DNA from: Octopus sinensis
Taxonomy: Eukaryota
Length of the DNA stretch: 64,000 nt
Assembly: GCF_006345805.1 (NCBI RefSeq)
Contig: NW_021832123.1
Span: forward strand, 62,001-126,000
Direction: 5' to 3'
In this document: piece after piece, positions 4,301-56,936 of the stretch
How positions within the stretch are numbered: position 1 is the first letter of the stretch
Layout of the letters: each line of letters starts with the position of its first letter
Made by a program: the position numbers and the translations under genes
Notes under the pieces: model-generated
Seen by the model: only the letters and a program-made list of their open reading frames with translations
What the model was told of the DNA's origin: nothing
Database searches by the model: none

Positions 4301-5536
4301 CAAGTATCCCCTCCTCACATTTGTAGACATAAAAATGCTCAAACTCGCAAACTCGCCTCCAATCTGCTGCTCAGACTGGTCGAAATGATGGGCACAACCA
4401 AAGTTCTTGAAGGTTCCCGAGAAATCCTCCTTCGAGTCCTTCCGGCCGTTGCCTACTTCTTGTGCGACAACGAGCCCCTGACACGGTTGGGAGTCGGAGT
4501 GACTGGCAGGTACAACGCGAGGAAGACTGTGAGTGTGCTGATGGAACATCCCCACTTTGGTCGAATTTGCCAGAAAAACCTGACAGTCGTGTCAGCAAAG
4601 TTGATATCTGACACAGTCGAGGTCATTCTCAAAAAGGTCGCCCTCTGACCCCAGTGACAGGGACTGGACGAACCCCCTGCGGACACAGCCAAAGTAAGGC
4701 CGGGGGAAAACGCCTCCCACCTCTCCGAGTATTACAACAATCTGCGGATGAGGAACGACCCGAATGTGCTCGAACTGGGAAACATCCTCGACGACATTTC
4801 TTCCGCTGACCACCGTTCGCGGGAACGAGGGTTTGTCTCCCTCGATGAAATGGCGAGGACGTCCTTGAGTGCAGTCCTGTACTACCTCAAGAGAGTAGTC
4901 GTGTCTCCTATTGCCAGATTGTCGACCTGCTCGTGGCCAAACTGAACGAAGCCAGCACTCGCTCCAACATGCTCGCCCTGAACACAGCCGAGCAGCTGCT
5001 TCCGTCCATTTCTGCACACATCCCCGACTCCCTCATGAAAGTGTTCATTGCGGCAGTCATCAGACAACTCATGTCCAAAAACAAGGACATTCTCAACAAG
5101 ACTAACAACGTCATCAACATTCTACTCCAAAACATCGGTTTCCCTTTAGTTAGACACGTGACTCAGATCCCTCCGTTATGATCAACTCCCTCGTGGCCAA
5201 CTTTGTGAACGGGACATCCCTCAGCAAGCCCCTGATAGTCCTGAAGCTCGCAGGTTGTCCTTCCCACTCACTTCAGACTCCATTTCTTTGATGGACAAAA
5301 AAAGGTCAAAGGACATTTCCAATTATGTTTTCCCCCTCTTTTGGAAACTCCTCGAGGCCTGTTCTACTACTGGACTGACACTGGGTGGGGTGATCTCTCT
5401 CAGGGAGGCCACAGCCAAACTGGCCTTTGCCTTGCAAAATCACGTGGGACCCGCATTGATTGCGGCGGCCAAGACTAACAACAACATTTCCCCCAAAAAT
5501 TTAAAGTTACTTTTTGACCTCCTGGAACCTCAATAG
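1311..5536 (+). CDS. TOGARAM1: TOG array regulator of axonemal microtubules (Crescerin/CHE-12/FAM179B), many micro-introns
   Basis: Spliced TOG3-like segment DWEKKCEGLNMV..EVKNLRSQVSRTAINCISAMF..VTPTRAVCAIV and C-terminus FPLFWKLL..LREATAKLAFALQNHVGPALI match TOGARAM1. The start is uncertain (1311 needs a frameshift; 1456 is in frame), and there is an apparent 1-nt frameshift near 2113. Confidence 0.9.
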
Positions 5537-8248: not shown

Positions 8249-10651
8249 TTAGTTGAGAGCGTAGTATTCAACGTCGTCAAAGTCCGCCACCTCGTATCCC
8301 GACAGTCCAAAGCCGGCGAATATTCCTTCTGTCACGTCAGTTGTACCCTCATAAATCAGATGACCTTCAATCCTGGCAGTAATTGTATTATTCTGGAACT
8401 CATATAATAATCAAACGTGTGCACTGAACCTCATCGTTATCCATTCGGGTACGGGCAGTGTGGTGGCGTTAGGAATCCGTGCAATCAAGGACAGGCGTGC
8501 TAAAGGCGAGTCACAATTTGCGTATACCCAAATCGTTGTAGAAAAGTGCTTCGTTTGACTGAGTGTTGTAAAAAAAGAAAAGTCCTCTGGCATTGAAGGA
8601 ATTGAGTCCTCCGTTGATCATTCGCAGCATTACGAACGGCATCACATTCAATTTGGGCAATATTTTCACTCTAACGGAAATCACCGAACTAAGTAGAAAA
8701 AGCATGCCAACTTGAGGGCGGACGGGAACAGAGTGAATGGTGCGTTGCAAGGAACGGGTGTCCAAAATACGGGCAACGCAGGCGCCATTTGACGGTAGAA
8801 ACGATTCCCACTTTCCTCCATCACTTCGAACGACCCGCATTGTTGGGAAAGGTAGGGAGCCTCAGAGTTCACTTCAAGCTGTTCAAAATTCTCAATGAAG
8901 AAGTGAGGGAAGCCGGCGGAGGGCGGAATGCTGGGCAGAGTGATGTCGTTGGTGTCCCTCGTACTAAACGAATACACACAGTCCGGCTCGAATGTAAAAC
9001 TGAATTCTCCGTCCACGATCTGGCTTATACACACAAATCAACCTCCACGTCCGCCATTTTGGCAAATTTGTCGCCATCGTTGGTCAACTTGGTCCTCCGA
9101 ACGTGTAACACCGTATTATTCTTCGAGACTATGAACTTGTCGTTTATTACGGACTTGACTCCCTGAACAAGTAAACCAGCCATGCAACCGTCGTCTCCAC
9201 CAGAATTAAAAAGTCCTCTCGACTAGGACTGGCCAGAGTAACGTAGGACCCAAAGTCGGCAAACCCAGCAGATCTTTCCAAAAACACCCAATCCATATCC
9301 ACGTGATGTGTCACATGAGCTGGGCGGTTAAGTTCGTCAAATCACCAATTTCAAAGAATGGGACCCTGACGGAGAAGTGGTTGCTCCAGGGTTGCGAAGC
9401 GAGGATGATTCCCGTTCCGTAGTAGGGGAGGCCCGGGTTGTAGGACGAGGTGAGGCACCACGCGAGGAATCCCGTCAGAGAGTGTTGGATGTAGTTCCTG
9501 TTGAATCTCTTAGAATATGCATAAAAATGGGACACAGCCACGAATCCGCCGTAGAACTGGTCTTCGGAGGCGATCTGGGGTTTTCCCTGAGAGTTGTAGT
9601 TGTAGTGGTCATCAGGGTAATGGAGTCTGATTGGTAGACAGAAATCAACCCGACGATATCCACCAAATCAGCAAGTGTGGCATCATTCTCCATATCCTGG
9701 TTGATGGTGGAGATTCCGTCTGCTGCGATTATTTTAGTGTTCGGGCAGCATCGGTCGAGATTATCCCGCAGAATCTACTCGGCTCATCCCACAGTCCAAC
9801 CTGCATGTAGTTCTTGTTGTACAGTTTCTCATTCCAAATCTGTGAGTTAGTCCAGGAATAACCCCGATGGAGTCAATCGTCAAGTTGTGGTGTTCCTTCG
9901 CCCCAGTAATCCATTTGGTGGTGTAGTTCGCCAGTTTGTGCGGATGCAAGTACGGGTCTCTCAGCCAGGAGGGGAAGCACCAGGAGAGTCCGCTCAGATG
10001 GAGTTTGTTATTTAACTATAAATGAAGAATAAAGACGACATTTTTGGCTGTAGTCATGATTTTCCACTCGTATCCTCGAAAGTAGTTTTCGTCGTGTTCG
10101 GTGTGCATGTGAGAGGCCTCACTGCCGCCTGGAGATGTGGCACTACTGGCTCACTTGAGGATTCACAGTCGCCCCCAATTTCAACTTTGAGGATTTGCAG
10201 AGATGCTCCGTATTTGGGCTGACCTGATTTAATTAATGAATTACCCGGAAAAGTAATTCCATAATTTGGTCGAAATTGGAATAATTGGTCAAATATTTGG
10301 ATGTCGCCTAAGAATAAGTTGAGGGGAAACTCCGCCGCCGCTGATTGCGCCGATCCCCATGTATTTCGAGGTCTTTGGGTCATCCAGGTCGATGACAGTG
10401 ACCGATTCTGGGATGCCGTTGTTATCCAGGTTCAGCACACGGGGAAATTGGGAGATTTCGTTGTTATCCAAGTCGATGACAGTGACCGATTCCCAGTTTT
10501 CGTTGCTATCCAGGTTGATCACAGTGGGGAATTGGGAGATTTCGTTATTCAGGGCGATCCCACTGAGGGATTGCCAGGTCTCGTGATTATCCGAGTTGAT
10601 CGCAAAAGAGGATACCAAAACTGTGAAGACAAGCATTTGGATTGCTGCCAT
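8249..10651 (-). CDS. GALC: Galactocerebrosidase (glycoside hydrolase family 59)
   Basis: Signal peptide; spliced GIGAISGGGATSK, PKYGASLQILKVEIGGD, HMHTEHDENYFRGYEW, GLSWCFPSWL, IDSIGIWNEK, EAPYLSQQCGSFE and C-terminal FGLSGYEVADFDDV all follow the human GALC order; about ten micro-introns. Confidence 0.93.
10382..10591 (-). repeat. Coding tandem repeat (42-nt / 14-aa subunits, 84-nt higher-order unit) in the GALC N-terminus
   Basis: NNEISQFPTVINLD-SNENWESVTVIDLD-NNEISQFPRVLNLD-NNGIPESVTVIDLD plus a partial upstream copy; DNA repeats such as TCGATGACAGTGACCGATTC occur twice. Confidence 0.9.
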
Positions 10652-17188: not shown

Positions 17189-17714
17189 CTAACAAGCTGC
17201 TTTCCCTCTGTAAGAAGGCACTTTCTTCCCGGTCTTGAGAGACTTGAGGTAGTTCACCTTCCTTCGAATGAGTTTATTCATCTGAAGAATGACAAAACCA
17301 GCCCAACCTTCTGCTTGGCCCTCATTAGCCTATATCTGTCATAATCGTTCATGTTGGCTTTCTATAGACTAATATATGAGGCACACACCTTCTCTCGGGA
17401 CTTCATTTTGCGGTAGAAAGGAGAGTTCTCCCACTGATTGTCAATGTCCGCCAGTTCCCAGGCCTTGGTCAAAGTCTTCTTCTTTGCACCGAAAGTAATG
17501 TCGATTTTGAACTTGGTTGGGTACACCCATTTGGATTGGATGGTTTGTCTGCGAATATTGTTTCCGGGGGCGTCGATGATGTACTAATAATGGGTAGAAG
17601 TAGTATTACTGAGTTGTGATCGATTATATTTATTATGGCATACAACTTCCCTTTAGTTGCCTCTGATAGGCCATAGACAATTCTCCCAACTTGAATTAAT
17701 CTATCCTCAGACAT
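17189..17714 (-). CDS. RPL14: 60S ribosomal protein L14 (eL14)
   Basis: IQVGRIVY..GKLYAIINIIDHN; KANMNDYDRYRLMRAKQK; three introns of 26-27 nt. Confidence 0.92.
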
Positions 17715-21670: not shown

Positions 21671-23723
21671 CTAACAGAGAACAGACTGAGCAGCCTCGTA
21701 TATGCACTCTGCAGAGATTCCATACTTGTCAAGCAAATCGAGGGAAGGGCCACTGTGGGGAATCTCCCGCACGCACAAATGCCTCATCTGAATTCCTGCC
21801 ACTCCGACAAGGGCAGAGGCCACCGCCTCCCCGAGTCCCCCTGCGAATTAACAGGCTGGCCTACCCTCAGGATAATGATCCTCGGCAACCACCAGACGTC
21901 CGTTGGTGGCAGAAACAGCCGACTTGATGGCAGCGACGTCGAGTGGTTTGACAGTAAACACGTCAATCACTCGAAGGGGCAATTCCGGGTGAGTTTGCCC
22001 GAGTTTCATTGCCTCCACGAGCGTGACCCCTGCCGCAACCACCGTGCACACGTCGTCACCACTGCTTCTCACCACCCGAGCCTGCCCCACACTGAAGGAG
22101 GCCGCGTTGTCGTAGATGACGGGGAAATTAGGACGGGATGTGCGAATAAAGCAAATGCCCGGAGTGTTGGCAGCCAATTCGACAGCCCTTTCGGTGGACA
22201 CGGCATCTCTTGGATAAAAGACGGTGGAATTGGGAATGCTTCTGAACATGGCGATATCCTCGAGGGCCATTTGGGACGCCCCATCCTCCCCTATCGACAC
22301 CCCCGCGTGGGATCCCACAAAATTAGCATTGGACATGGATATTGCCCCCATCCGTATCTGATCAAAAGCACGAGTCCAGAATGCAGCGAATGTGCTGGCA
22401 TACACCACAGTCCGTGCTCTCGTGGCCGCCCCAATGGCCACCCCCGCCATGTTTTGCTCGGCGATGAAGCACTCCACAAATCGGCCATCTCCCCCAAACG
22501 AGTCCTACAAATTGAATATTTCAGAACACGTTGAATTTGGAGGCAAAGGTGGAATTCTTGGTGTCCCCGTCCAACCCCAGCACTGACGGGTTCCCCTTCC
22601 CCATCTTCAGTAGTCCTTCCCCGTAGGCACTCCGAGTGGCCACCTATCCGTCGAGGACTGTCTCTACCATTTGCCCTGTCGAATAATCCGGCGGGGAGGA
22701 CAGTCGGTACTCTCCTGATGGCACTTCCTCCACCAACACGGAAGGTTTGGGGACCAACTCGGACACGGGAAATGTTTGGTGGGACAAATTAGACTTCAAA
22801 TATTGGAGGACACCCTCCGCCTTATCCCCAAGCACTTTTCCATGCCATCCCCCACTGTCCTCAATCCCCGGAAAATCCTTTCCTTTCTTAGTCATGGCAA
22901 TGATGGCTGTGGGCTGGTCGAGGCAACTCCTGGCTGTCTCGAATGCAGAAATGAGTGCAGGAATGTCATGTCCGTCCACCACAAGTGAATTAAATCTACC
23001 AATTAAGGCCAAACACACCCAAAGGCGGCACAGCGGAGTCGATATGTGTCGAACTGGTGGCCAAGCATGGTCTCCTGGGACTGTCCGTAGACATTGCAGT
23101 CGATGACCACGACGAGGTTGGCCAGTCGGTAGTGGGCAGCCAAGGCCATGGCCTCCCAGACGGACCCCTCGGCGGACTCCCCATCACCCATCACACAGTA
23201 AACGCGATATCTGAGTGTGAGGGAGTGGAATACGGAGCTTTGTCGATGTATTTGGCCACATAAGCCATTCCTACGGCACTGCTGAGTCCCTGCCCCAACG
23301 ACCCGGTGGCCACGTCGACGAAGGGAATCCTCTGCTGGTTAGACAGGCCTGACATGCCGGAGTTGGGTGCCCTTCCAGACGACAGTCCAATTTACGCAGT
23401 TGGAGGAGTTCAGATTGCTCCACTTGGCCGAGTTCTGCCCAGACAGCGTAGAGGATTGGGGCAGCGTGTCCCTGGAGGTTAGGGAAGAGTGCACTTTGGA
23501 GAGAATGAATCGGTCGTTTGAAGGATTGAGCCAGTTGTGGGGAAATAACGCATTTCTTTGAAGAAGAGGACACTCATTATTTCAGCAATCGAACTGCAAG
23601 ATGTTGGGTGTCTATAGGGTGAGTTATCTCCTGTCATCACCCAGAATTAGCCGCATTTGTTGACAGAATTGAGCTAATACGAAGTCTTGTGGCGAGTGCA
23701 CGTAATTGTTCAATTGTGGTCAT
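21671..23723 (-). CDS. TKT: Transketolase
   Basis: [88 protein letters not shown]; eight introns of 23-29 nt; one apparent 1-nt frameshift near 23540. Confidence 0.97.
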
Positions 23724-31108: not shown

Positions 31109-31804
31109 TCAAGAACAAGAGCACTTACTACGTCTCCCAATCTTGTCCAGTTTTTGTCCAGCCACAGGATTCCCAGTCCCGGCAGAGGCCACCTTGGCTG
31201 CAATGGCTGCCCTGGCTGCCTTTATGAACAACTGCAATGTGACACCCAAATCACATGTTCGACGTTCCCCTGGTAGGCACTGACAGCCTCAAACTCCATG
31301 CTGTTGTTTCTGGCGTACTCAGCCCCCTCCTGGTTGGTGACAGCAATCCCCTCCTGCAAGTCGTTCTTGTTGGACACTGGAGTAGTGAGGGAGACCAACC
31401 AAGGATGGTGGACACATTGGACGAGTCGCAGTTCCGATCCTTTTCCCCAATCCATTTATGCACAGAATTGAAGGAATCACGGTTATTCACGGCGTAGACA
31501 ATGATGACTGCGTTGGCTCCCCGGTAGTAGCTGGGGTGAGTGGGGGACTGTACGAGGAAGTGATTGTCCGGAACCGTTCTTGGCCGGCAGTGTCCCATAT
31601 CTGCATTTTGACTTTCTGTCCATCAATGTCGAGGATCTTTGTTTTAAAGTCGACGCCGATCGTGCTGATTTGGTTGGCCGACACGGAACCGGTGGAGAAA
31701 CTGTTGAGGATGGAGGTCTTGCCGACGGCTGGAGGAGTAAGGGCAATCTGCTTACACGATTCGCCTATTAAAAGAATCTTAATGAGGTTGTGGGGTCCTG
31801 CCAT
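31109..31804 (-). CDS. Rab GTPase, Rab1/Rab35-like, divergent
   Basis: Spliced [43 protein letters not shown], and C-terminal CSCS prenylation motif; four introns of 23-27 nt. Confidence 0.92.
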
Positions 31805-33560: not shown

Positions 33561-33629
33561 ACTACTAAAATTATACAATTTAATAATAATATATTTATTT
33601 TATTAATAATAAATATTTAATTTGTGTTG

Positions 33630-34412
33630 ATGTCGTCCCTTGCTTGTGTTGGAAATGACAAAACCATGAACATTAACCCTCTAATTCTGACCAATATCCA
33701 GTCCTCTCTGTACTTCAAGAACACTCTGGTGGAAATAACATCCTACGGGGATATAATCGACGAGATCTACAACCGAGTGTCCCACTTGGAGCCATGGGAG
33801 AAGGGAACCCGCCACCAGGGAGGTCAGACAGGAATGTGTGGCGGGGTAAGTATTTCTGAAGAGTAACTCATATTTGTTCTCTTAATTAAGTAGGTCCGTG
33901 GAGTGGGGTCGGGAGGGATCATCTCCAGTTCATTCTGCCTCCTCTACAAACTCCACACCATGAGACTTGGGGGGAGACAACTCCACGGACTCATCACCCA
34001 CCGGGACTCCCCCTACATTCGGGCTATGGGCTTCATGTACCTCCGATTCACACAACTCAAGACTCTTTGGGGGTGGTTCGAGCCATTCCTCAACGACCAC
34101 CAGCCTATTGACGTGAAGGCGGGGGGAGGCCACGTTATTTCCATTGGGGAGATGCTCAGACTGTGGTTGACCAAGCTGGATTGGTTTGAGACTATTTTCC
34201 CCCGCATTCCTGTGCCAGTCCACAAGGAGATTGATGCCAAGTTGAGAGAACTGGGTCCGTACAAGTCCCCTGTTGAGGAGAAGGGGAGAGAACGGAGTTA
34301 CTCCCCCAGTCCGTCTCCCCCTCCCAGACGTCGACGACACCACCGGAGAGAGACCTCCTATGAACGAAGATTGAGGAAGGAACACGAACGAATGAGGAGA
34401 AGACGTCGATGA
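33630..34412 (+). CDS. PRPF38B: Pre-mRNA splicing factor 38B
   Basis: GNDKTMNINPLILTNIQSS, HLEPWEKG..GQTGMCGG|VRGVGSGGIISS.FCLLYKL, DSPYIRAMGFMY, FPRIPVPV; one 48-nt intron; short Arg-rich tail. Confidence 0.95.
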
Positions 34413-36902: not shown

Positions 36903-39065
36903 TCAGTCTGACGAACTATCAGAAGAAGACGAGCTATCGGAGGAAGAATCATCACTATCCGAAGAATCCTTCTTAGCGGCAATAGCAGCAGACTTTAACT
37001 GCACTTCCAACAACTCCCTCGTCTCATTAGTCAACCCAGAAAGTCCAATCGCTGTGAAGAAATTAATCGAAAAGCGCATATTTTCCGCCGAGTCAGTCGG
37101 AAACAGCCCACTAAAACTCCGACTCAGCGTCCTTAAAAATAACACAAATCCACAACTCGTCGCTCAGTCGTTCGTGGAGTCGCTGAATGCTCATAAACTC
37201 GGACAACTCCTGGAAGAGATACTTCAAGAACACTCTGGAAGAAGATGTGCCCGACGGTGTGAGAGACATACAATCCATGGTCTGTGGAAGTCACACAACA
37301 CAACAACCCCCCACGAAATGGAGTCAGCAAACAAAAGATGGGCAAAAAACTTGGCAACATTCATCAACTTGACAATCTCCAGTCTGTGACAAGTGGAATA
37401 TTGTTGTCGTAGAAGGTTTTCGAAGGGAGGGACGAATATATCACTGAGGGCACACAGCCGCTACAATTGAGAGAGTGGGCCTACTTCTCCGACCAGTCCA
37501 TAGAACTTCATATATGTCCGTTGTTGGGCACAGCAATCCACCACCATTTCGCCCACCACCACCTCCTGTCCGTCCTGCAACTCCATTTGCAGTAGTTTGT
37601 GGATTGTCTCGTCAGAACTCAGACTCGACTGGAAGACCAAATATATTTTCTTGCGAAATTCCACAGTATTGCACTCCGTCTGGTCGAGAATGACCGACTC
37701 GTCCTCCTTGACTGTCTCCTCTTCCTCCTCCTCACTCTCATCACTGTCCAAAATATCTGCCATTCTCACAATTCAACCACCTTTCACAAACTCACGATAT
37801 TTCGCCTCATTCTCCGCGTATTTGTCATCAAACTTGAAGATATCTACAATCAGCAAAACAGTCAACTCAGTTCTTCATCCATGACTAGTTTGTCCATGAG
37901 GGAGAACATGTGGGTCATCTGGTCCTCTTCCTCTATCAAATCCAAATGTTCCTTCACCGAGGGATAGTCCTGGGGGTCAACCACTGACAAAACACCTTAA
38001 AGTTATCCTTGATGACTGCCATTATCATTTCTATTATATATGCTGTTTTGTTGCTGATTTCCCCCTCGTGGAGGATATTTCGAAGGGATGACTCGATGGC
38101 TGGCATTAATGACCCACCACACCTTTGAGTCCAGCAGGGGACAGCTCTTTCAACATGCCCCCGCAGTGCTTCAGGAACTCCACTGCTGTCTCAATACTAT
38201 CCGGGGTCACATTTTCCATAAAGAGGGTGAGTATCTCCAATGGCAGTATTTCATACACCTAACGCTCACCCAACCACACAACCATCCTCTGGTTAAACAA
38301 ATGTGCCAGAAAGCTGAGAGAAGCCAAACAAATGGTCTTGTCGTTCTGTTTATAAGCCCGACGGAACCTCAAAATGAGTCTCCTGGTGACCAAATCGCCA
38401 ATCATGGGGAACTGCTATGACCAGTCCAACTCACCTTCGAATTGACAATCGCCAGGAGAGAAGCATAGACGTGTGTGAGTGCAGTGAGCCCGCATTGAAA
38501 GGTGATGAAGGAATCGGCCACCAGTCCTCTACCACTACACACACAACCCAACCTCCCACGCACAATGTTTTCTCTCATCAGAGTCTTGGCCACTGCCCGG
38601 ACGTTGTGTTCGGTCACTTTGTTGAGTACTCCATTTATGGTTCGTCTGAGCACTTCGAAGGCCACTCTCTGGTACTCCACACTGCAGTGAGGACGGGAAA
38701 TACCTGTTTATGTTTTTGTCGGGACTGGTCTTGTATTCCATCAGCTTACGGAATGTCCAGAATTTGAGAGCCACGGGGGCTACTGGCTTTACTCGTTTTT
38801 CTCCTTCTTTGTTGACTTCTTTGATGAGAGATGTGTGTGTTCCATATATCGATATTCTGTCCTTTATTTTGGCTCGTGCTTCATCTGCTGTGGCAAATGT
38901 GTCATCCGCGGGTTTTTTTGCTTTGTCGTGGTCGAGTGGTTCTTTGTGTTTCCGTTTATGGTGACGGGGCTCTTTGTGGTGTCTGTGATCACGGAGGGTC
39001 TGGGGGGGTGAAGTGGTCAGCGGTTCCTCAGAGACATTCAGGTTGTCCTCGTTGTTAACCACCAT
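36903..39065 (-). CDS. CWC22: Pre-mRNA splicing factor CWC22 (MIF4G + MA3)
   Basis: YQRVAFEVLRRTINGVLNKV, RENIVRGRGL, THVYASLLAIVNSKFP, DCCAQQRTYMKFYGL, GLFPTDSAENMRFSINFFTAIGLSGLT; about ten introns of 22-26 nt. Confidence 0.95.
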
Positions 39066-41384: not shown

Positions 41385-44340
41385 TCATGACAAAGCTTGT
41401 GCAGCACAGGAAACAATAAGAGTAGTTAGTTTATTCCATTTCCCGCGATCTTGGGCGACGTCCCGTAGTGCATCGATTCTTTACCAGCCCTCTTTAGGTC
41501 TCTATCCAGCGTACCCGGGAGAGTATTTCTTGGTCGTCCACGGAAACGATGGCTCCCAGCTTCTAAATAGTCCTCCATAGCAACGTTTGCCGGTTCATCC
41601 AAATCCATCCTTAGAATGTGTCCAAACAGCCTCCATCTGCATTCGGTAATTTCGATTGGTTTGCTTGATGTTCTGGCATAAACTGTTATGCTACTCAGCC
41701 TTGAATGCCACTTGGAGGTTAGAGTACGTCGAAGGTGATCTCTATGGAAAGAGTCTAGTCCCCAAGTTCCGGCGTTATATAGGAGTATTGGCTTCACTAG
41801 TGAATTGTATAGTCGTATCCGTGTTTTTGTGCTGAGTCCTTTGCGTTTTAGCCAATTTTCCTTTAAGCTGCGTAGTGCACTGTTTGCATGTGTTTTTCGC
41901 ATAATCACGTCTTGTTCGTCTCCCAATAGAGATCCGAGTTTCTTTACTTTTCTCCAATGTTCGTCCAGCTTAGACTTCTGTCTTGCTAGTTCAGTAAATT
42001 TTGTTTTCTCCACGTTTACATTGAGGAACCACTCAGCAAGTCTATTTGGCATCACCTCCAATAGGCTTTCCAGAACGTCCCTGTCGGAAGAAATAAAATC
42101 CACGTCATCCGCGTATGCCACCACATTGATCTTTCCTTCATAGTATGGTTTTAGTTCTCTCAATGCAGTTTCCAGATATATCACAAATAGTATAGGAGAT
42201 AACGGATCCCCTTGAGGTGTTCCAGATGTTGTTTCAAATGGTTTAGAGCAGTGGTTCTCAACGGTGGGCGATTCGCCCCCTAGGGGCGATTTTTTCTGCC
42301 AGGGGGGCGATGGCTGATTGCTAATATTTGAAAAATTAAAATCTTATGTTAGAAGTCGATAATCTTTGAAAAAATAAAGATATATAATCGAGTCTAATAA
42401 TATTTATTAATAATATGATATTTTTATTATATTTTATTTAAATTTCTAAGCGTGATTTCTAGTTATCATTATGGGTCGTGTTTAAAAAAAAGTCAGAATG
42501 TATAAAGATGAATATATTTCTCTTGGATTTATTAAAGATCCTCAAGATCCTAATAAACCACTTTGTCTTCAATGTGGTACAATTTTTTCGAATGAGGCAA
42601 TGAAACCGTCTCGTTTGATTGAACATTTAAAACGAAAACATCATAATTCAATTGGAAAAAAGCCAGACTTTTTTCTAGAATTAAAAAAGAATTTTGAAAA
42701 TAAAAACACCTTACCGGCAATCTTTAATAAAAATATATCTCAAAATGTCTCTGGTATCTTATTCATATAAAGTTGCAGAGATAATCGCAAAAACTGGTTG
42801 CATTATTATTTTAATTTATAGGTAATGCCCATTCGATTGCAAAAAATGTCATCCGTCCTTGTTTAAATTTATTTATAAACGATATCTTACAAAAAGATTC
42901 TTCAAATATTATGAAGACTATTCCATTAAGCAACGACACTATACGAAGAAGAATTGATGAAATTTCTAATGAAATTGAACAATCTTTAATTTTATTTCTC
43001 AGAGAACGCAAGTTTTCAGTCCAACTTGTTTCCAAAATCTTTAGTCACGGATACTACAGGATTGTCAATATTCAAAATGTTTGAATCTTATTTATTCTTA
43101 AATGATATTCCATTTGAACATATTTTATCGTGCGCAACTGATGGCGCAATGGCTATGGTTGGAAAATATCGTGGTTTTTTAGCTTTTCTAAAACAAAAAT
43201 CTCCAATGTCCACTTCAATTCATTGTATTTTACATCGGCATCATTTAATTGCAAAAAAATTATCTGAAGAATTGAATGCATCAATGCAAATTGTTATCAA
43301 AGTTATCAATAAAATTAAAAGAAACAGCAAGTACGATCGTATTTTTCGTGAATACTGCACTAATCAAAATGAAGATTATGTTAGGTTACTTTTACATACC
43401 GAAGTAAGATGGTTATCCAAGGGAAATTGTCTTGAAAGATTGGGATATTATTTGATGCAATTGTTGATTTTTTAAGATTACAAGAAGAATTTAATTTTTT
43501 AATTCCTGCAAAATTCATAGAAAAAATATTTTTTATTTAAATTGGATTTTTAAAAAATTAAATGAAGTTTCATTGGCTTTACAAGGAGATTATGTTAATT
43601 TAATTGATTGCAAACGAATTATAAATACATTCATTGAAAAAATTCAATTTTACAAATTTAATTTAAGTAATAGAAAATTTGGAAAATTCGATTTTTATGA
43701 CCACACTTTTGATGACAACGATCTGAAAATTTATGAATTTCATTTAGAATCTTTGGAACAAGATTTGAAAAAAAGATTTGAAGATTTAATTAATTTAAAC
43801 TTTTCTGATTGGATGATTAATCCTTGGTTGCCCATTCATTATGATTCTGATGATGAATGTCAAGAAGAATAATAGAACTAAAAAACGACGAAGAACTGAA
43901 AATAAAATTTAAAAATGAAAACCTGACACAATTCTGGGGAGAAAAATCTATAAAAATTAAATTTCCGAAATTATGGGAAAAAATGATGCCAATAATATTA
44001 TGTTTTCCTACGTCATACTGCGTAGAGAGAGGATTCAGCACTCTGAATAGTATGATCGGAAAAAAAGAAACAAACTAAATATAGAAGAAAGAGGCGACAT
44101 TAGAATTACACTTACGAAAAGAAGTACAAATTTTGAAAAACTTGTCAATCTTCATCAACCACAAGGATCTCATTAAAACTCTTATTTTTTAAATAAAAAT
44201 TTTTACTAATGAAATAAGGGGGCGATATAAAAATTGGAGGGGCGAAAAAAATTCCAAGGGGGCGATACAAAAATAAAGGTTGAGAACCACTGGTTTAGAG
44301 CACTTGTCTCGTACTCTGACCGATAGATAGGTTTCTGATT
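41385..44340 (-). mobile_element. 5'-truncated RTE-group LINE (about 0.9 kb) carrying the hAT insertion
   Basis: KPFETTSGTPQGDPLSP..YLETALREL..YADDVDF..KKLGSLLG; the frame is continuous across the hAT TSD; possible 5-bp TSD ATGGA at 41380-41384 and 44341-44345. Confidence 0.85.
42249..44292 (+). mobile_element. hAT transposon, Buster/ZBED8-like subfamily, non-autonomous (deleted and frameshifted)
   Basis: 14-bp TIRs CAGTGGTTCTCAAC; 8-bp TSD GTTTAGAG at 42241-42248 and 44293-44300; BED finger (PLCLQCG..MKPSRLIEHLKRKH), TDGAMAM, HCILHR, EVRWLSKG, SYCVERGFS; subterminal GGGGCGAT repeats. Confidence 0.95.
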
Positions 44341-55197: not shown

Positions 55198-56936
55198 GAC
55201 TTTAAGAAAGGGCTTTTCAGGAATGCTTTTACTCAAGTGAGAAAATCACATACTCCTTTTACTGCTCGGAAAGGAAAAGTCAACGACAGGGATGGCAGAG
55301 AGTTATTCAGCGGTCACAGCGTCCGAAACAGATGGAGGGAGTTCGTGGAAGAACTTTATTCTCCAGAATACAAAACTTCAGCATCTCGTCATGGAACGTT
55401 TACTATCTTTCCGAACCCCGAAGATGATATCCGAGAAAGTGATGTTACATGGGCCGTAAATGAATTGCCTAGCAACAAGGCGCCTGGGCCGGACAATATT
55501 TCAAGCGAGATGCTTAAGGCCATTCCTTTATCAGCAATCACAACTCTCTGCAAGAATATTTGGAAAACTGGTGTTTGGCCTTCTGATTGGAAGAAATCAA
55601 TATTTATTATGTTGCCTAAAAAGGGCGACAGAAAAGTCTGCTCGAATTACCGCACAATTGCTCTCATATCTCATGTTAGCAAAATACTCCTGACGTTAAT
55701 AAAACAACGTCTATCTCCAATCTCAGAAAAGATTCTTTCAAATTGCCAAGCCGGTTTTAGACGTGGTCGTGGTACGAGAGATCACATCTCCAGCCTTCGT
55801 TGGATTTTGGAAAAATCCCGTGAATCCCAGAAGCCTGTTTTCATGTGTTTCATTGACTATCGCAAGGCTTTTGATTGCGTATCTCACGTGAAACTTTGGT
55901 CCGTCCTAGAAGAATTTGGAATTCCTCATCATCTCATATCGATAATAAAATCTCTTTATACTGACCAAGAGGGTTTTGTGCGGACCCCTTATGGAGACAC
56001 AGACTGTTTCGGTATTGGGAGGGGCGTCCGACAAGGCTGTATTCTATCCCCGCTACTGTTTAATATTTACACGGAGAAAGTCATGGAGGAGTTAAATTGC
56101 GAAAATGACATCGGAATCAAGATTGGTGGCCTAAACATAAATAATCTCCGTTATGCAGACAATACTACTTTGCTGTCTGAAACAGAGGATGGCTTGAGGC
56201 AATTAATTACGAGAGTCAAAGACAACAGTGCCTCTTTTGGCCTATTCCTAAATGTGAAAAAAACCAAAATAATGACAACTTCACTGTCTGGAAAAATTAG
56301 TGTCATCGTCGACGACGAAGAAATAGAATGTGTTGAAAGTTATATTTTTCTTGGAAGTCTGATAACCATAGATGGTGGTTGTGTTTCAGAAATTAATAGA
56401 CGGATGGCTATGTGCAAGAGTACGATGATAAAACTGAATCGGATCTGGAGTAGCAAGGATGTTTCTCTAAAGACAAAGATAAGTCTAGTCAACGCGATTG
56501 TGTTTCCCGTTTTTCTCTATGGTTGTGAATCTTGGACACTGTCCAAAGCTCAAGCAAAAGAGTGCACTCACTGGAATTATGGTGCTGGCGCAAACTTTTG
56601 AACATAAATTGGTACGAAAAAGTGTCAAATGTCGTTGTTCTCGAAAAGATTAAACCTACACTGTCGCTTGTGGCGAAAGTTTGGAAGCAACAATTATCAT
56701 ATCTGGGGCACGTGCTTCGGGGGAATGGTATAGGAAAAGGAATCCTGCTGTCTTCGTTCGCTGAAAAAAGGAAGCAGGGTAGACCGAAACTAAACTGGAC
56801 ATCTGAAGTAGTGAAACTTACCGGATATCTTTTGTCGGAAATAGCAGTGCTGGTGGGGGATAGAGCTTCGTGGAGGGACTTGTCTTACAGAATCGCCAAT
56901 GGCCGAAATCGGCTGAATATGGCTTAACTTTAACTT
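55198..56936 (+). mobile_element. 5'-truncated RTE-BovB-like LINE
   Basis: NKAPGPD, NYRTIAL, QAGFRRGRGT, DYRKAFD, GVRQGCILSP, LRYADN, YIFLGS; (AACTTT)n-like tail; 12-bp TSD TAATTTACAAAT at 55186-55197 and 56937-56948. Confidence 0.93.

Follow-up and report, generated by a model that had tools for sequence, protein, structure and literature searches.

How introns of 23 nucleotides (nt) without a usable 5' consensus are excised by a spliceosome built for introns of at least 50 nt is still unanswered (PMC13644364). The question is raised here by the transketolase gene (TKT) at positions 21671-23723 of a 64,000-nt stretch of the Octopus sinensis assembly GCF_006345805.1 (contig NW_021832123.1, positions 62,001 to 126,000; this whole stretch is referred to below as the window), where conserved genes are interrupted by introns of 22-29 nt. 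Analysis of 35 such introns in five genes leads us to a reading that we consider reasonably probable, namely that they are GT-AG introns of the major U2-type spliceosome, shrunk to near-minimal workable size in an animal, most likely a dicyemid, that evolves fast and is rich in introns.

The coding span of TKT is exactly 21671-23723, with the ATG at 23723 and the stop codon ending at 21671. Unspliced, its reading frame shifts repeatedly along the minus strand. Removal of eight segments (29, 23, 26, 23, 23, 24, 25 and 24 nt) and repair of one base yielded a protein of 618 amino acids (aa), of which residues 3-615 aligned with human TKT (3ooy_A) with an E value of 5e-216 and 0 gaps at the eight junctions. 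Seven of the TKT introns are GT-AG and one is GC-AG. The features of the gene are listed here, with the positions of A counted from the 5' end of the intron and a slash marking the junction in the restored protein.

21671-23723, minus strand: transketolase gene (TKT), 9 exons and 8 micro-introns, 618 aa, from the 3ooy_A alignment
23612-23640, minus strand: TKT intron 1, 29 nt, GTGATG..TAG, A at 16, 17 and 21; restores NSG/HPTSC
23472-23494, minus strand: TKT intron 2, 23 nt, GTGCAC..CTAAC..CAG, A at 15 and 16; restores ILSK/GHAAP
23332-23357, minus strand: TKT intron 3, 26 nt, GC-AG, GCATGT..CTAAC..CAG, A at 18 and 19; gives GHPTP/RIPFVDV
23211-23233, minus strand: TKT intron 4, 23 nt, A at 16 and 18; restores DKAP/YRVYC
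22996-23018, minus strand: TKT intron 5, 23 nt, G/T-rich, A at 15 and 16; restores CAAFG/FNSLVV
22644-22667, minus strand: TKT intron 6, 24 nt, A at 17; restores TGQM/VATRSAYG
22505-22529, minus strand: TKT intron 7, 25 nt, A at 17 and 18; restores ASKFN/DSFGG
21841-21864, minus strand: TKT intron 8, 24 nt, A at 16 and 17; restores HYPEG/GLGEAV
23538-23541, minus strand: 1-nt frameshift in a C-run of TKT exon 2; one added base makes the alignment to human TKT gapless

Intron 3 (23357-23332) has the sole non-GT donor among the 35 validated introns. Nearby GTs were tried by hand as its donor and none restored the frame, while the 26-nt GC donor was gapless. An intron was also considered for the frame change at 23541-23538; since there is no GT..AG on hand and a single base repairs the frame, this change is a 1-nt indel and not an intron, probably a homopolymer error left in a long-read assembly. 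Among relatives of the TKT exon (72% identity), the one with comparable DNA has an uninterrupted TKT open reading frame (ORF) at these positions and thus gives no comparative evidence on the introns.

The same excision restored conserved proteins in four further genes, encoding the splicing factor CWC22, a Rab1/Ypt1-like GTPase (Rab), a galactocerebrosidase-like protein (GALC-like) and ribosomal protein eL14. Introns were counted as validated when the spliced model aligned without gaps at its junctions to solved structures of orthologues, which gave 35 introns (TKT 8, CWC22 11, Rab 4, GALC-like 9 and eL14 3). The exceptions to gapless junctions are one CWC22 intron of ambiguous length (23 or 26 nt) and a 2-aa length difference from human TKT beside TKT intron 7. 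Every correction guided by an alignment gap raised the score and closed the gap, with an 8-aa insertion corresponding to a 24-nt intron and 1-aa insertions to 3-nt shifts of a boundary. A preliminary description of this DNA had proposed that conserved proteins are regained by removing segments of mostly 22-29 nt, and this held in all five genes, TKT additionally needing its 1-nt repair and one GC-AG intron; the five examples that it offered, all on the minus strand, were correctly placed (23494-23472, 23233-23211 and 23018-22996 in TKT, 38703-38682 in CWC22 and 31553-31531 in Rab).

With a codon-usage gene finder, which is blind to the interiors of introns, the coding strands yielded numerous predicted introns in the range of 22-29 nt. 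It caught most frame-shifting introns, made boundary errors in multiples of 3 (20 for 23 nt, 21 for 24 and 32 for 23), missed multiple-of-3 introns without stops and called antisense genes. Because of these boundary errors, missed introns and antisense calls, its introns of 20-30 nt in other genes (n = 23) were kept only as a secondary set, which together with the validated set makes 58. The secondary set behaves like the validated one.

The validated introns range from 22 to 29 nt, with a mode of 23 and a median of 24 (one of 22 nt, 13 of 23, seven of 24, two of 25, nine of 26, two of 27 and one of 29). Their ends are GT-AG in 34 cases and GC-AG in one, so the acceptor is AG in all 35; position -3 of the acceptor is C in 21, T in 12 and A in 2, giving YAG with a pyrimidine in 33 of the 35. 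Could such segments instead be frame changes produced by assembly errors, pseudogenes or recoding? The true 1-nt homopolymer indel in TKT shows that the assembly does contain errors. However, 35 segments start with GT or GC and end in AG, are 22-29 nt long and carry a positional A and YAG, their excision gives gapless alignments to orthologues in five genes, and random GT..AG segments from the same exons have no A peak; we regard this alternative as very improbable. Judged from the sequence, the segments are introns of defined boundaries and lengths.

The lengths of the validated introns also fall unevenly into classes (3n+2, 25; 3n, 9; 3n+1, 4), and their distribution dips at 25 nt (p = 1e-4 by a binomial test of 3n+2 versus 3n+1). 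An in-frame stop is present in seven of nine multiple-of-3 introns, a small sample, and it is often the acceptor TAG itself. The excess of 3n+2 and the in-frame stops may hint at translation-coupled surveillance, or may reflect sliding of boundaries by whole codons.

What, then, is left in these introns for a spliceosome to recognise? Outside the GT, donors hold about 1.3 bits of information over positions -4 to +9, in agreement with the near absence of a 5' splice-site consensus in the preliminary description, and the GTGCAC, GTGTGT, GTTGAC and GTTTAT donors quoted there are all present. Exon position -1 is G in 57% of donors, and positions +3 to +5 avoid C and carry A, G and T in about equal shares. 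An extended 5' splice-site consensus that could pair with U1 and U6 was not found: GTRAGT donors number 3 of 58, and in 13 of 58 none of the four positions +3 to +6 matches R-A-G-T. Likewise, there is no polypyrimidine tract, the spacing from the A to the AG being only 5-7 nt and positions -4 and -5 being unbiased. Several introns had been described as G/T-rich and devoid of such a tract, and seven of the 35 indeed have G/T-rich interiors with two or fewer C. Donor hexamers are heterogeneous, with no conserved /ATATCC or /GTATCC of the U12 type, and the single GTATCC donor (4304-4326, plus strand) is not accompanied by a TCCTTAAC branch site. An Rfam scan of the window matched no family and found no small nuclear RNA genes.

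Two further features of composition were observed. Intron position +7 is a pyrimidine in 30 of the 35 validated introns (~0.35 bits, like the exon -1 G) and is among the few biased positions on the donor side. Taken by gene and on the same strand, the CWC22 introns (37132-38552) are G/T-rich, with G 68 versus C 35, and the Rab introns (31377-31755) are C/T-rich, with C 33 versus G 12.

The sole signal inside the introns is an A at a near-constant position. Position 17 is A in 21 of the 35 introns, and position 16 or 17 in 27; among validated introns of 22-24 nt, for which a branch-like A at 16 or 17 had been claimed, the proportion is 19 of 21. When intron interiors were shuffled, the maximal A count at any single position averaged 11.0, and 21 was reached in 0 of 5000 shuffles. 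GT..AG control segments of matched lengths from exons of the same genes showed no A peak, with A frequencies of 0.21-0.30 across positions 14-20. The A chosen by position has T at -2 in 24 of 34 introns, a pyrimidine at +1 in 24 of 34 and T at +2 in 21 of 34, a yUnAy-like context, and an unsupervised expectation-maximisation (EM) motif search in the introns returned [C/G]T[C/G]A[C/A]. EM assignment of branch sites that ignored position had too weak a motif to work with; its assignments scattered from 8 to 24. By its sequence context, T at -2 and a pyrimidine at +1, the position-chosen A carries the U2-pairing branch consensus and is a candidate branch site of the yUnAy kind. Early AGs 2-4 nt past the A are bypassed, for example in introns 38434-38412 and 23357-23332.

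We considered from which end the position of this A is set. The preliminary description suggested that distance may be measured from the 5' end; in such a model, the branch A would be chosen some 16-17 nt past the donor, with little reliance on extended U1 pairing, and the AG would then be taken downstream. Position 17 is indeed the most A-rich in the validated set, with a relative entropy of 0.76 bits compared to 0.56 at -8, A17 is kept in five of nine validated 26-nt introns, and the donor consensus, both here and in published dicyemids (PMC2483917), is too weak for normal U1 pairing. However, because most introns are 23-24 nt long, positions 16-17 are also 7-8 nt from the 3' end: A is found at -8 in 19 of 35 introns, and -8 and -7 together account for 26 of 35, versus 27 of 35 for 16 or 17. 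In the 58-intron set, A at -8 (33/58) exceeds A at 17 (28/58), and of the 26-nt introns 5/12 have A17, 4/12 A18 and 6/12 A19, all three being common and A19 no rarer than A17.

To compare the two anchors, we used leave-one-out likelihoods from a hidden-branch-point model whose position prior was anchored at the 5' end in one version and at the 3' end in the other. The difference of 5' minus 3' was +0.1 nats with A only and -3.1 nats with a position weight matrix in the validated set, and -6.8 and -2.1 nats, respectively, in the validated and secondary sets combined. Bootstrap intervals included zero for all four, so that none of these cross-validated likelihoods favours placement from the 5' end, and a test on the per-position A profile leaned slightly toward the 3' end (-3.1 and -12.2 nats). 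The sole support for a 5' ruler over a 3' anchor comes from a genome-wide description of Dicyema japonicum, according to which the distance between the A residues and the AG is greater in longer introns (PMC13644364). We think a 5' ruler unlikely.

Conversely, the branch A might be fixed 6-8 nt before the AG, as in other compact-intron lineages, with the constant 5' distance a by-product of near-constant length. An A lies 5-9 nt from the 3' end in 57 of 57 introns and 6-7 nt from it in 43 of 57, the standard deviation of the 3' distance is 1.0 nt, whereas the same A gives 1.4-1.9 nt when its distance is counted from the 5' end, and the leave-one-out likelihood in the larger set is slightly better. 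The last-A statistic, however, is biased toward the 3' end by construction, validated introns of 26-27 nt such as 9188-9163, 9800-9775 and 31755-31729 have their sole plausible A 9 nt from the end, and the published trend in D. japonicum runs in the opposite direction (PMC13644364). This placement from the 3' end also seems rather unlikely to us.

The longer introns fit neither single anchor well. In introns of 25-30 nt (n = 22), the 5' rule alone accounted for 12 and the 3' rule alone for 13, while an A within positions 16 to L-6 (where L is the intron length) was found in all 22. The centroid of A shifted by 0.35-0.5 nt per nt of intron length, but shuffled interiors gave the same slope (~0.50, 95% interval 0.25-0.74), so the slope cannot tell 5' from 3' models. 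With 58 introns, about a third of them at least 25 nt long, 5' and 3' anchoring cannot be separated. A window bounded by a minimum distance on each side is the most economical reading and, on balance, probably the right one; it fits every intron, although as the most permissive of the models it is weakly tested. Thus the real introns, the weak donor and the A at 16-17 of the preliminary interpretation stand, whereas the window does not demonstrate its 5' ruler, a 3' description being equally good.

If the branch A is confined in this two-sided manner, recognition would use the signals that remain, namely GT, a preferred G at exon -1, the avoidance of C at +3 to +5, a degenerate yUnAy and YAG. 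The branch A would have to lie at least ~15-16 nt past the 5' splice site and at least ~6 nt before the AG. In a 23-nt intron these two minimum distances would leave only positions 16-17, which is why the A would look fixed there, and in longer introns it would spread over 16-20; the length floor of 22-23 nt would arise because the two minima sum to it. The positional A would then be the branch point, and the two distances would correspond to steric minima of the catalytic spliceosome. A more radical proposal is that dicyemid spliceosomes read a 23-nt intron whole, from its fixed geometry (~16 nt between GT and branch A, then ~6-7 nt to the AG), not by U1-type pairing at the 5' splice site; we find this decidedly doubtful.

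Does the window represent a new system? The published work on dicyemid micro-introns also includes Ogino 2010 (Gene 449:70), which is cited in PMC6543705. Dicyema introns were described as very short and uniform, at 26.2 +/- 1.9 nt (n = 16; Aruga 2007, PMC2222250), and the 5' boundaries of dicyemid introns, at 0.5 bits, were scored as weaker than any others known, with no branch motif found (Irimia and Roy 2008, PMC2483917); dicyemid genome papers give a median intron of 27 nt (Zverkov 2019, PMC6543705) and a mean of 38 nt (Lu 2019, PMC6736024). For myxobolids and D. japonicum, Hadjez 2026 reported a 5' splice site reduced to 'GTa' and a 3' site reduced to 'AG', along with 2-3 A residues that lie farther upstream of the AG the longer the intron is, a pattern compatible with U2-dependent splicing whose mechanism was left open (PMC13644364).

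Like dicyemids (D. acuticephalum, D. japonicum and Dicyema sp.), the source of the window would be an intron-rich animal with a cephalopod host, and it shows a narrow range of intron lengths in the 20s (their median is 25-27 nt), with a 5' splice site of approximately GT(a), AG at the 3' end, no polypyrimidine tract and A residues before the AG. Most introns are below 30 nt, TKT and CWC22 have 8-11 introns each, and splice-site motifs are nearly absent. In contrast with published dicyemids, the introns here are slightly shorter (mode 23, median 24 nt), position +3 is A, G or T equally instead of 'a', and the A is strong (60% at one position and 77% over two) where theirs is 'weakly conserved' (PMC13644364). 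Myxobolid myxozoans (Henneguya, Thelohanellus and Myxobolus) have comparable introns, with a median of 22-27 nt and reduced 5' and 3' motifs (PMC13644364), but these cnidarians parasitise fish and annelids and their genomes are rich in AT (29% GC in H. salminicola), whereas the genes here have ~50% GC and lie in an octopus assembly.

Ciliates likewise have near-minimal introns (20-35 nt in Paramecium; 15 nt in the heterotrichs Stentor and Fabrea) with a weak GT(A) donor (PMC9004412, PMC2222250), and the conserved branch A at a fixed place in their tiny fixed-length introns can be likened to the introns described here. Ciliates are protists, however, and the protist gene content and often reassigned stop code of their genomes were not found in the window, which has animal-type genes with standard stops and introns 7-8 nt longer than those of heterotrichs. 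Intron-poor parasites (Encephalitozoon and Trichomonas) share short introns with a branch site near the 3' splice site (PMC2483917), but theirs are few and have strong 5' and branch motifs, while here the introns are many and the motifs nearly absent. The preliminary description had offered these introns as an under-described system, and this does not hold up: introns of this length class have been in the literature since 2007 (PMC2222250), the weakest 5' splice site since 2008 (PMC2483917), and the reduced motifs and A pattern since 2026 (PMC13644364). Every element of the finding is already published, and the differences (the shorter mode, a +3 with no preference for A and the stronger positional A) are minor.

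These comparisons bear on the source of the scaffold. The TKT exon ORF is found on the 246-kb contig VCDQ01000770.1 of GCA_006345805.1, which is an Octopus sinensis assembly (PMC10700109). Genes are densely packed in the window and of animal type (a Rel homology domain, GH59 galactocerebrosidase, bHLH, CLASP_N, CWC22 and PRP38), and ORFs end where their orthologues end, at standard stop codons. Octopuses host dicyemids in their renal sacs, and to our knowledge only two animal groups have such micro-introns, dicyemids being one of them. The encoded proteins are strongly divergent: when spliced eL14 was used to look for transcripts and named relatives, just 8 database proteins had 5-residue words in common with it, none of them a significant match. 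Because of the micro-introns, the divergent animal proteins, the gene density and the carriage of dicyemids by octopuses, the scaffold is most likely dicyemid, and it is probably DNA of a dicyemid or dicyemid-like parasite co-assembled with its octopus host, that is, a contaminant.

Several observations weigh against the reading of shrunken U2-type introns with a two-sided branch window in a dicyemid. The two-sided window has more freedom than the single-anchor models, so its universal fit is a weak test, and a rough estimate at ~20% A puts the chance of an A in a window of 4-9 nt at about 70%. The validated intron 9800-9775 has an earlier AG, 6 nt past A17, that is not used, and the movement of A residues away from the AG as D. 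japonicum introns lengthen leans toward 5' anchoring (PMC13644364). In addition, the assignment to dicyemids is circumstantial, with dicyemids compared by published descriptions, and database searches found no transcript-derived proteins of this organism or its close relatives.

The four other genes that supplied validated introns are listed here.

36903-39065, minus strand: CWC22 splicing-factor gene, 11 micro-introns, 633-aa model, human CWC22 5mqf_T
38682-38703 (22 nt), 38529-38552 (24 nt), 38412-38434 (23 nt) and 38259-38282 (24 nt), minus strand: CWC22 introns 1-4
38100-38122 (23 nt), 37970-37995 (26 nt), 37844-37866 (23 nt) and 37757-37780 (24 nt), minus strand: CWC22 introns 5-8
37461-37484 (24 nt), 37282-37304 (23 nt, or 26 nt if the donor is at 37307) and 37132-37156 (25 nt), minus strand: CWC22 introns 9-11
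31109-31804, minus strand: Rab1/Ypt1-like GTPase gene, 4 micro-introns, Ypt1 2bcg_Y
31729-31755 (27 nt), 31531-31553 (23 nt), 31377-31399 (23 nt) and 31232-31254 (23 nt), minus strand: Rab introns
8249-10651, minus strand: galactocerebrosidase-like gene (GH59), 9 validated micro-introns, mouse GALC 4ccc_A
10308-10330 (23 nt), 10219-10244 (26 nt), 10129-10154 (26 nt), 10016-10039 (24 nt) and 9840-9862 (23 nt), minus strand: GALC-like introns
9775-9800 (26 nt), 9627-9649 (23 nt), 9320-9345 (26 nt) and 9163-9188 (26 nt), minus strand: further GALC-like introns
17189-17714, minus strand: ribosomal protein eL14 gene, introns 17584-17609 (26 nt), 17358-17384 (27 nt) and 17282-17307 (26 nt)

The corrected CWC22 model aligned with human CWC22 over residues 116-632 (E value 1e-155); the only gaps flanking a junction were at the ambiguous 23/26-nt intron (37282-37304), and the others lay off the junctions, the large ones in an acidic linker rich in Glu and Asp. 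The corrected Rab model aligned with Ypt1 over residues 7-167 (E value 4.7e-43) and regained its P-loop; its intron 31729-31755, at 27 nt, is a multiple of 3 with no in-frame stop. The GALC-like model matched mouse GALC with an E value of 1.8e-80 and no gaps at the nine validated junctions, and the eL14 model aligned with 6d90_M without gaps over residues 5-130. Within the GALC-like gene, a 63-nt micro-exon (10245-10307, minus strand) lies between introns of 23 and 26 nt, all of which the gene finder had merged into one 112-nt intron. The predicted 5' extension of this gene (10330-10651, minus strand) contains repeated NNEISQFP(T/R)V(I/L)NLD units with no homology support and may be a tandem repeat that is not coding.

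Two genes for spliceosome proteins are present in the window, CWC22 (36903-39065, minus strand), whose sequence is well conserved relative to human, and a member of the PRP38 family (33621-34409, plus strand). The latter holds a candidate 48-nt intron (33846-33893) with a perfect GTAAGT donor in what is a rough model; a PDB search with this model gave no match. PRP38 was the sole match in a Pfam scan of plus-strand ORFs of at least 80 aa up to ~34 kb, because the proteins of the window are too divergent. The half of the window from 39 to 64 kb has a lower GC content (0.29-0.42 per 2 kb) and few predicted genes. An intact 454-aa ORF at 55237-56601 (plus strand) encodes an RTE/BovB-like non-LTR reverse transcriptase, only 62% identical to its best relative in the database, and a second reverse-transcriptase fragment lies at 41426-42184 (minus strand); a search with the RTE-like ORF for further loci in the same genome found no copies.

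For annotation, gene finders that bar introns shorter than ~30 nt would shatter every gene on this scaffold, and, placed in a public octopus assembly, the scaffold can pass for host sequence. For the question of splice recognition, a homology-validated set of introns with a strong positional A is a useful substrate. Were 23-nt introns to be read by geometry after all, this would mean a remodelled or U1-independent early spliceosome assembly in an animal, and the excess of 3n+2 lengths together with the in-frame stops would point to translation-coupled proofreading of mis-splicing, as in Paramecium.

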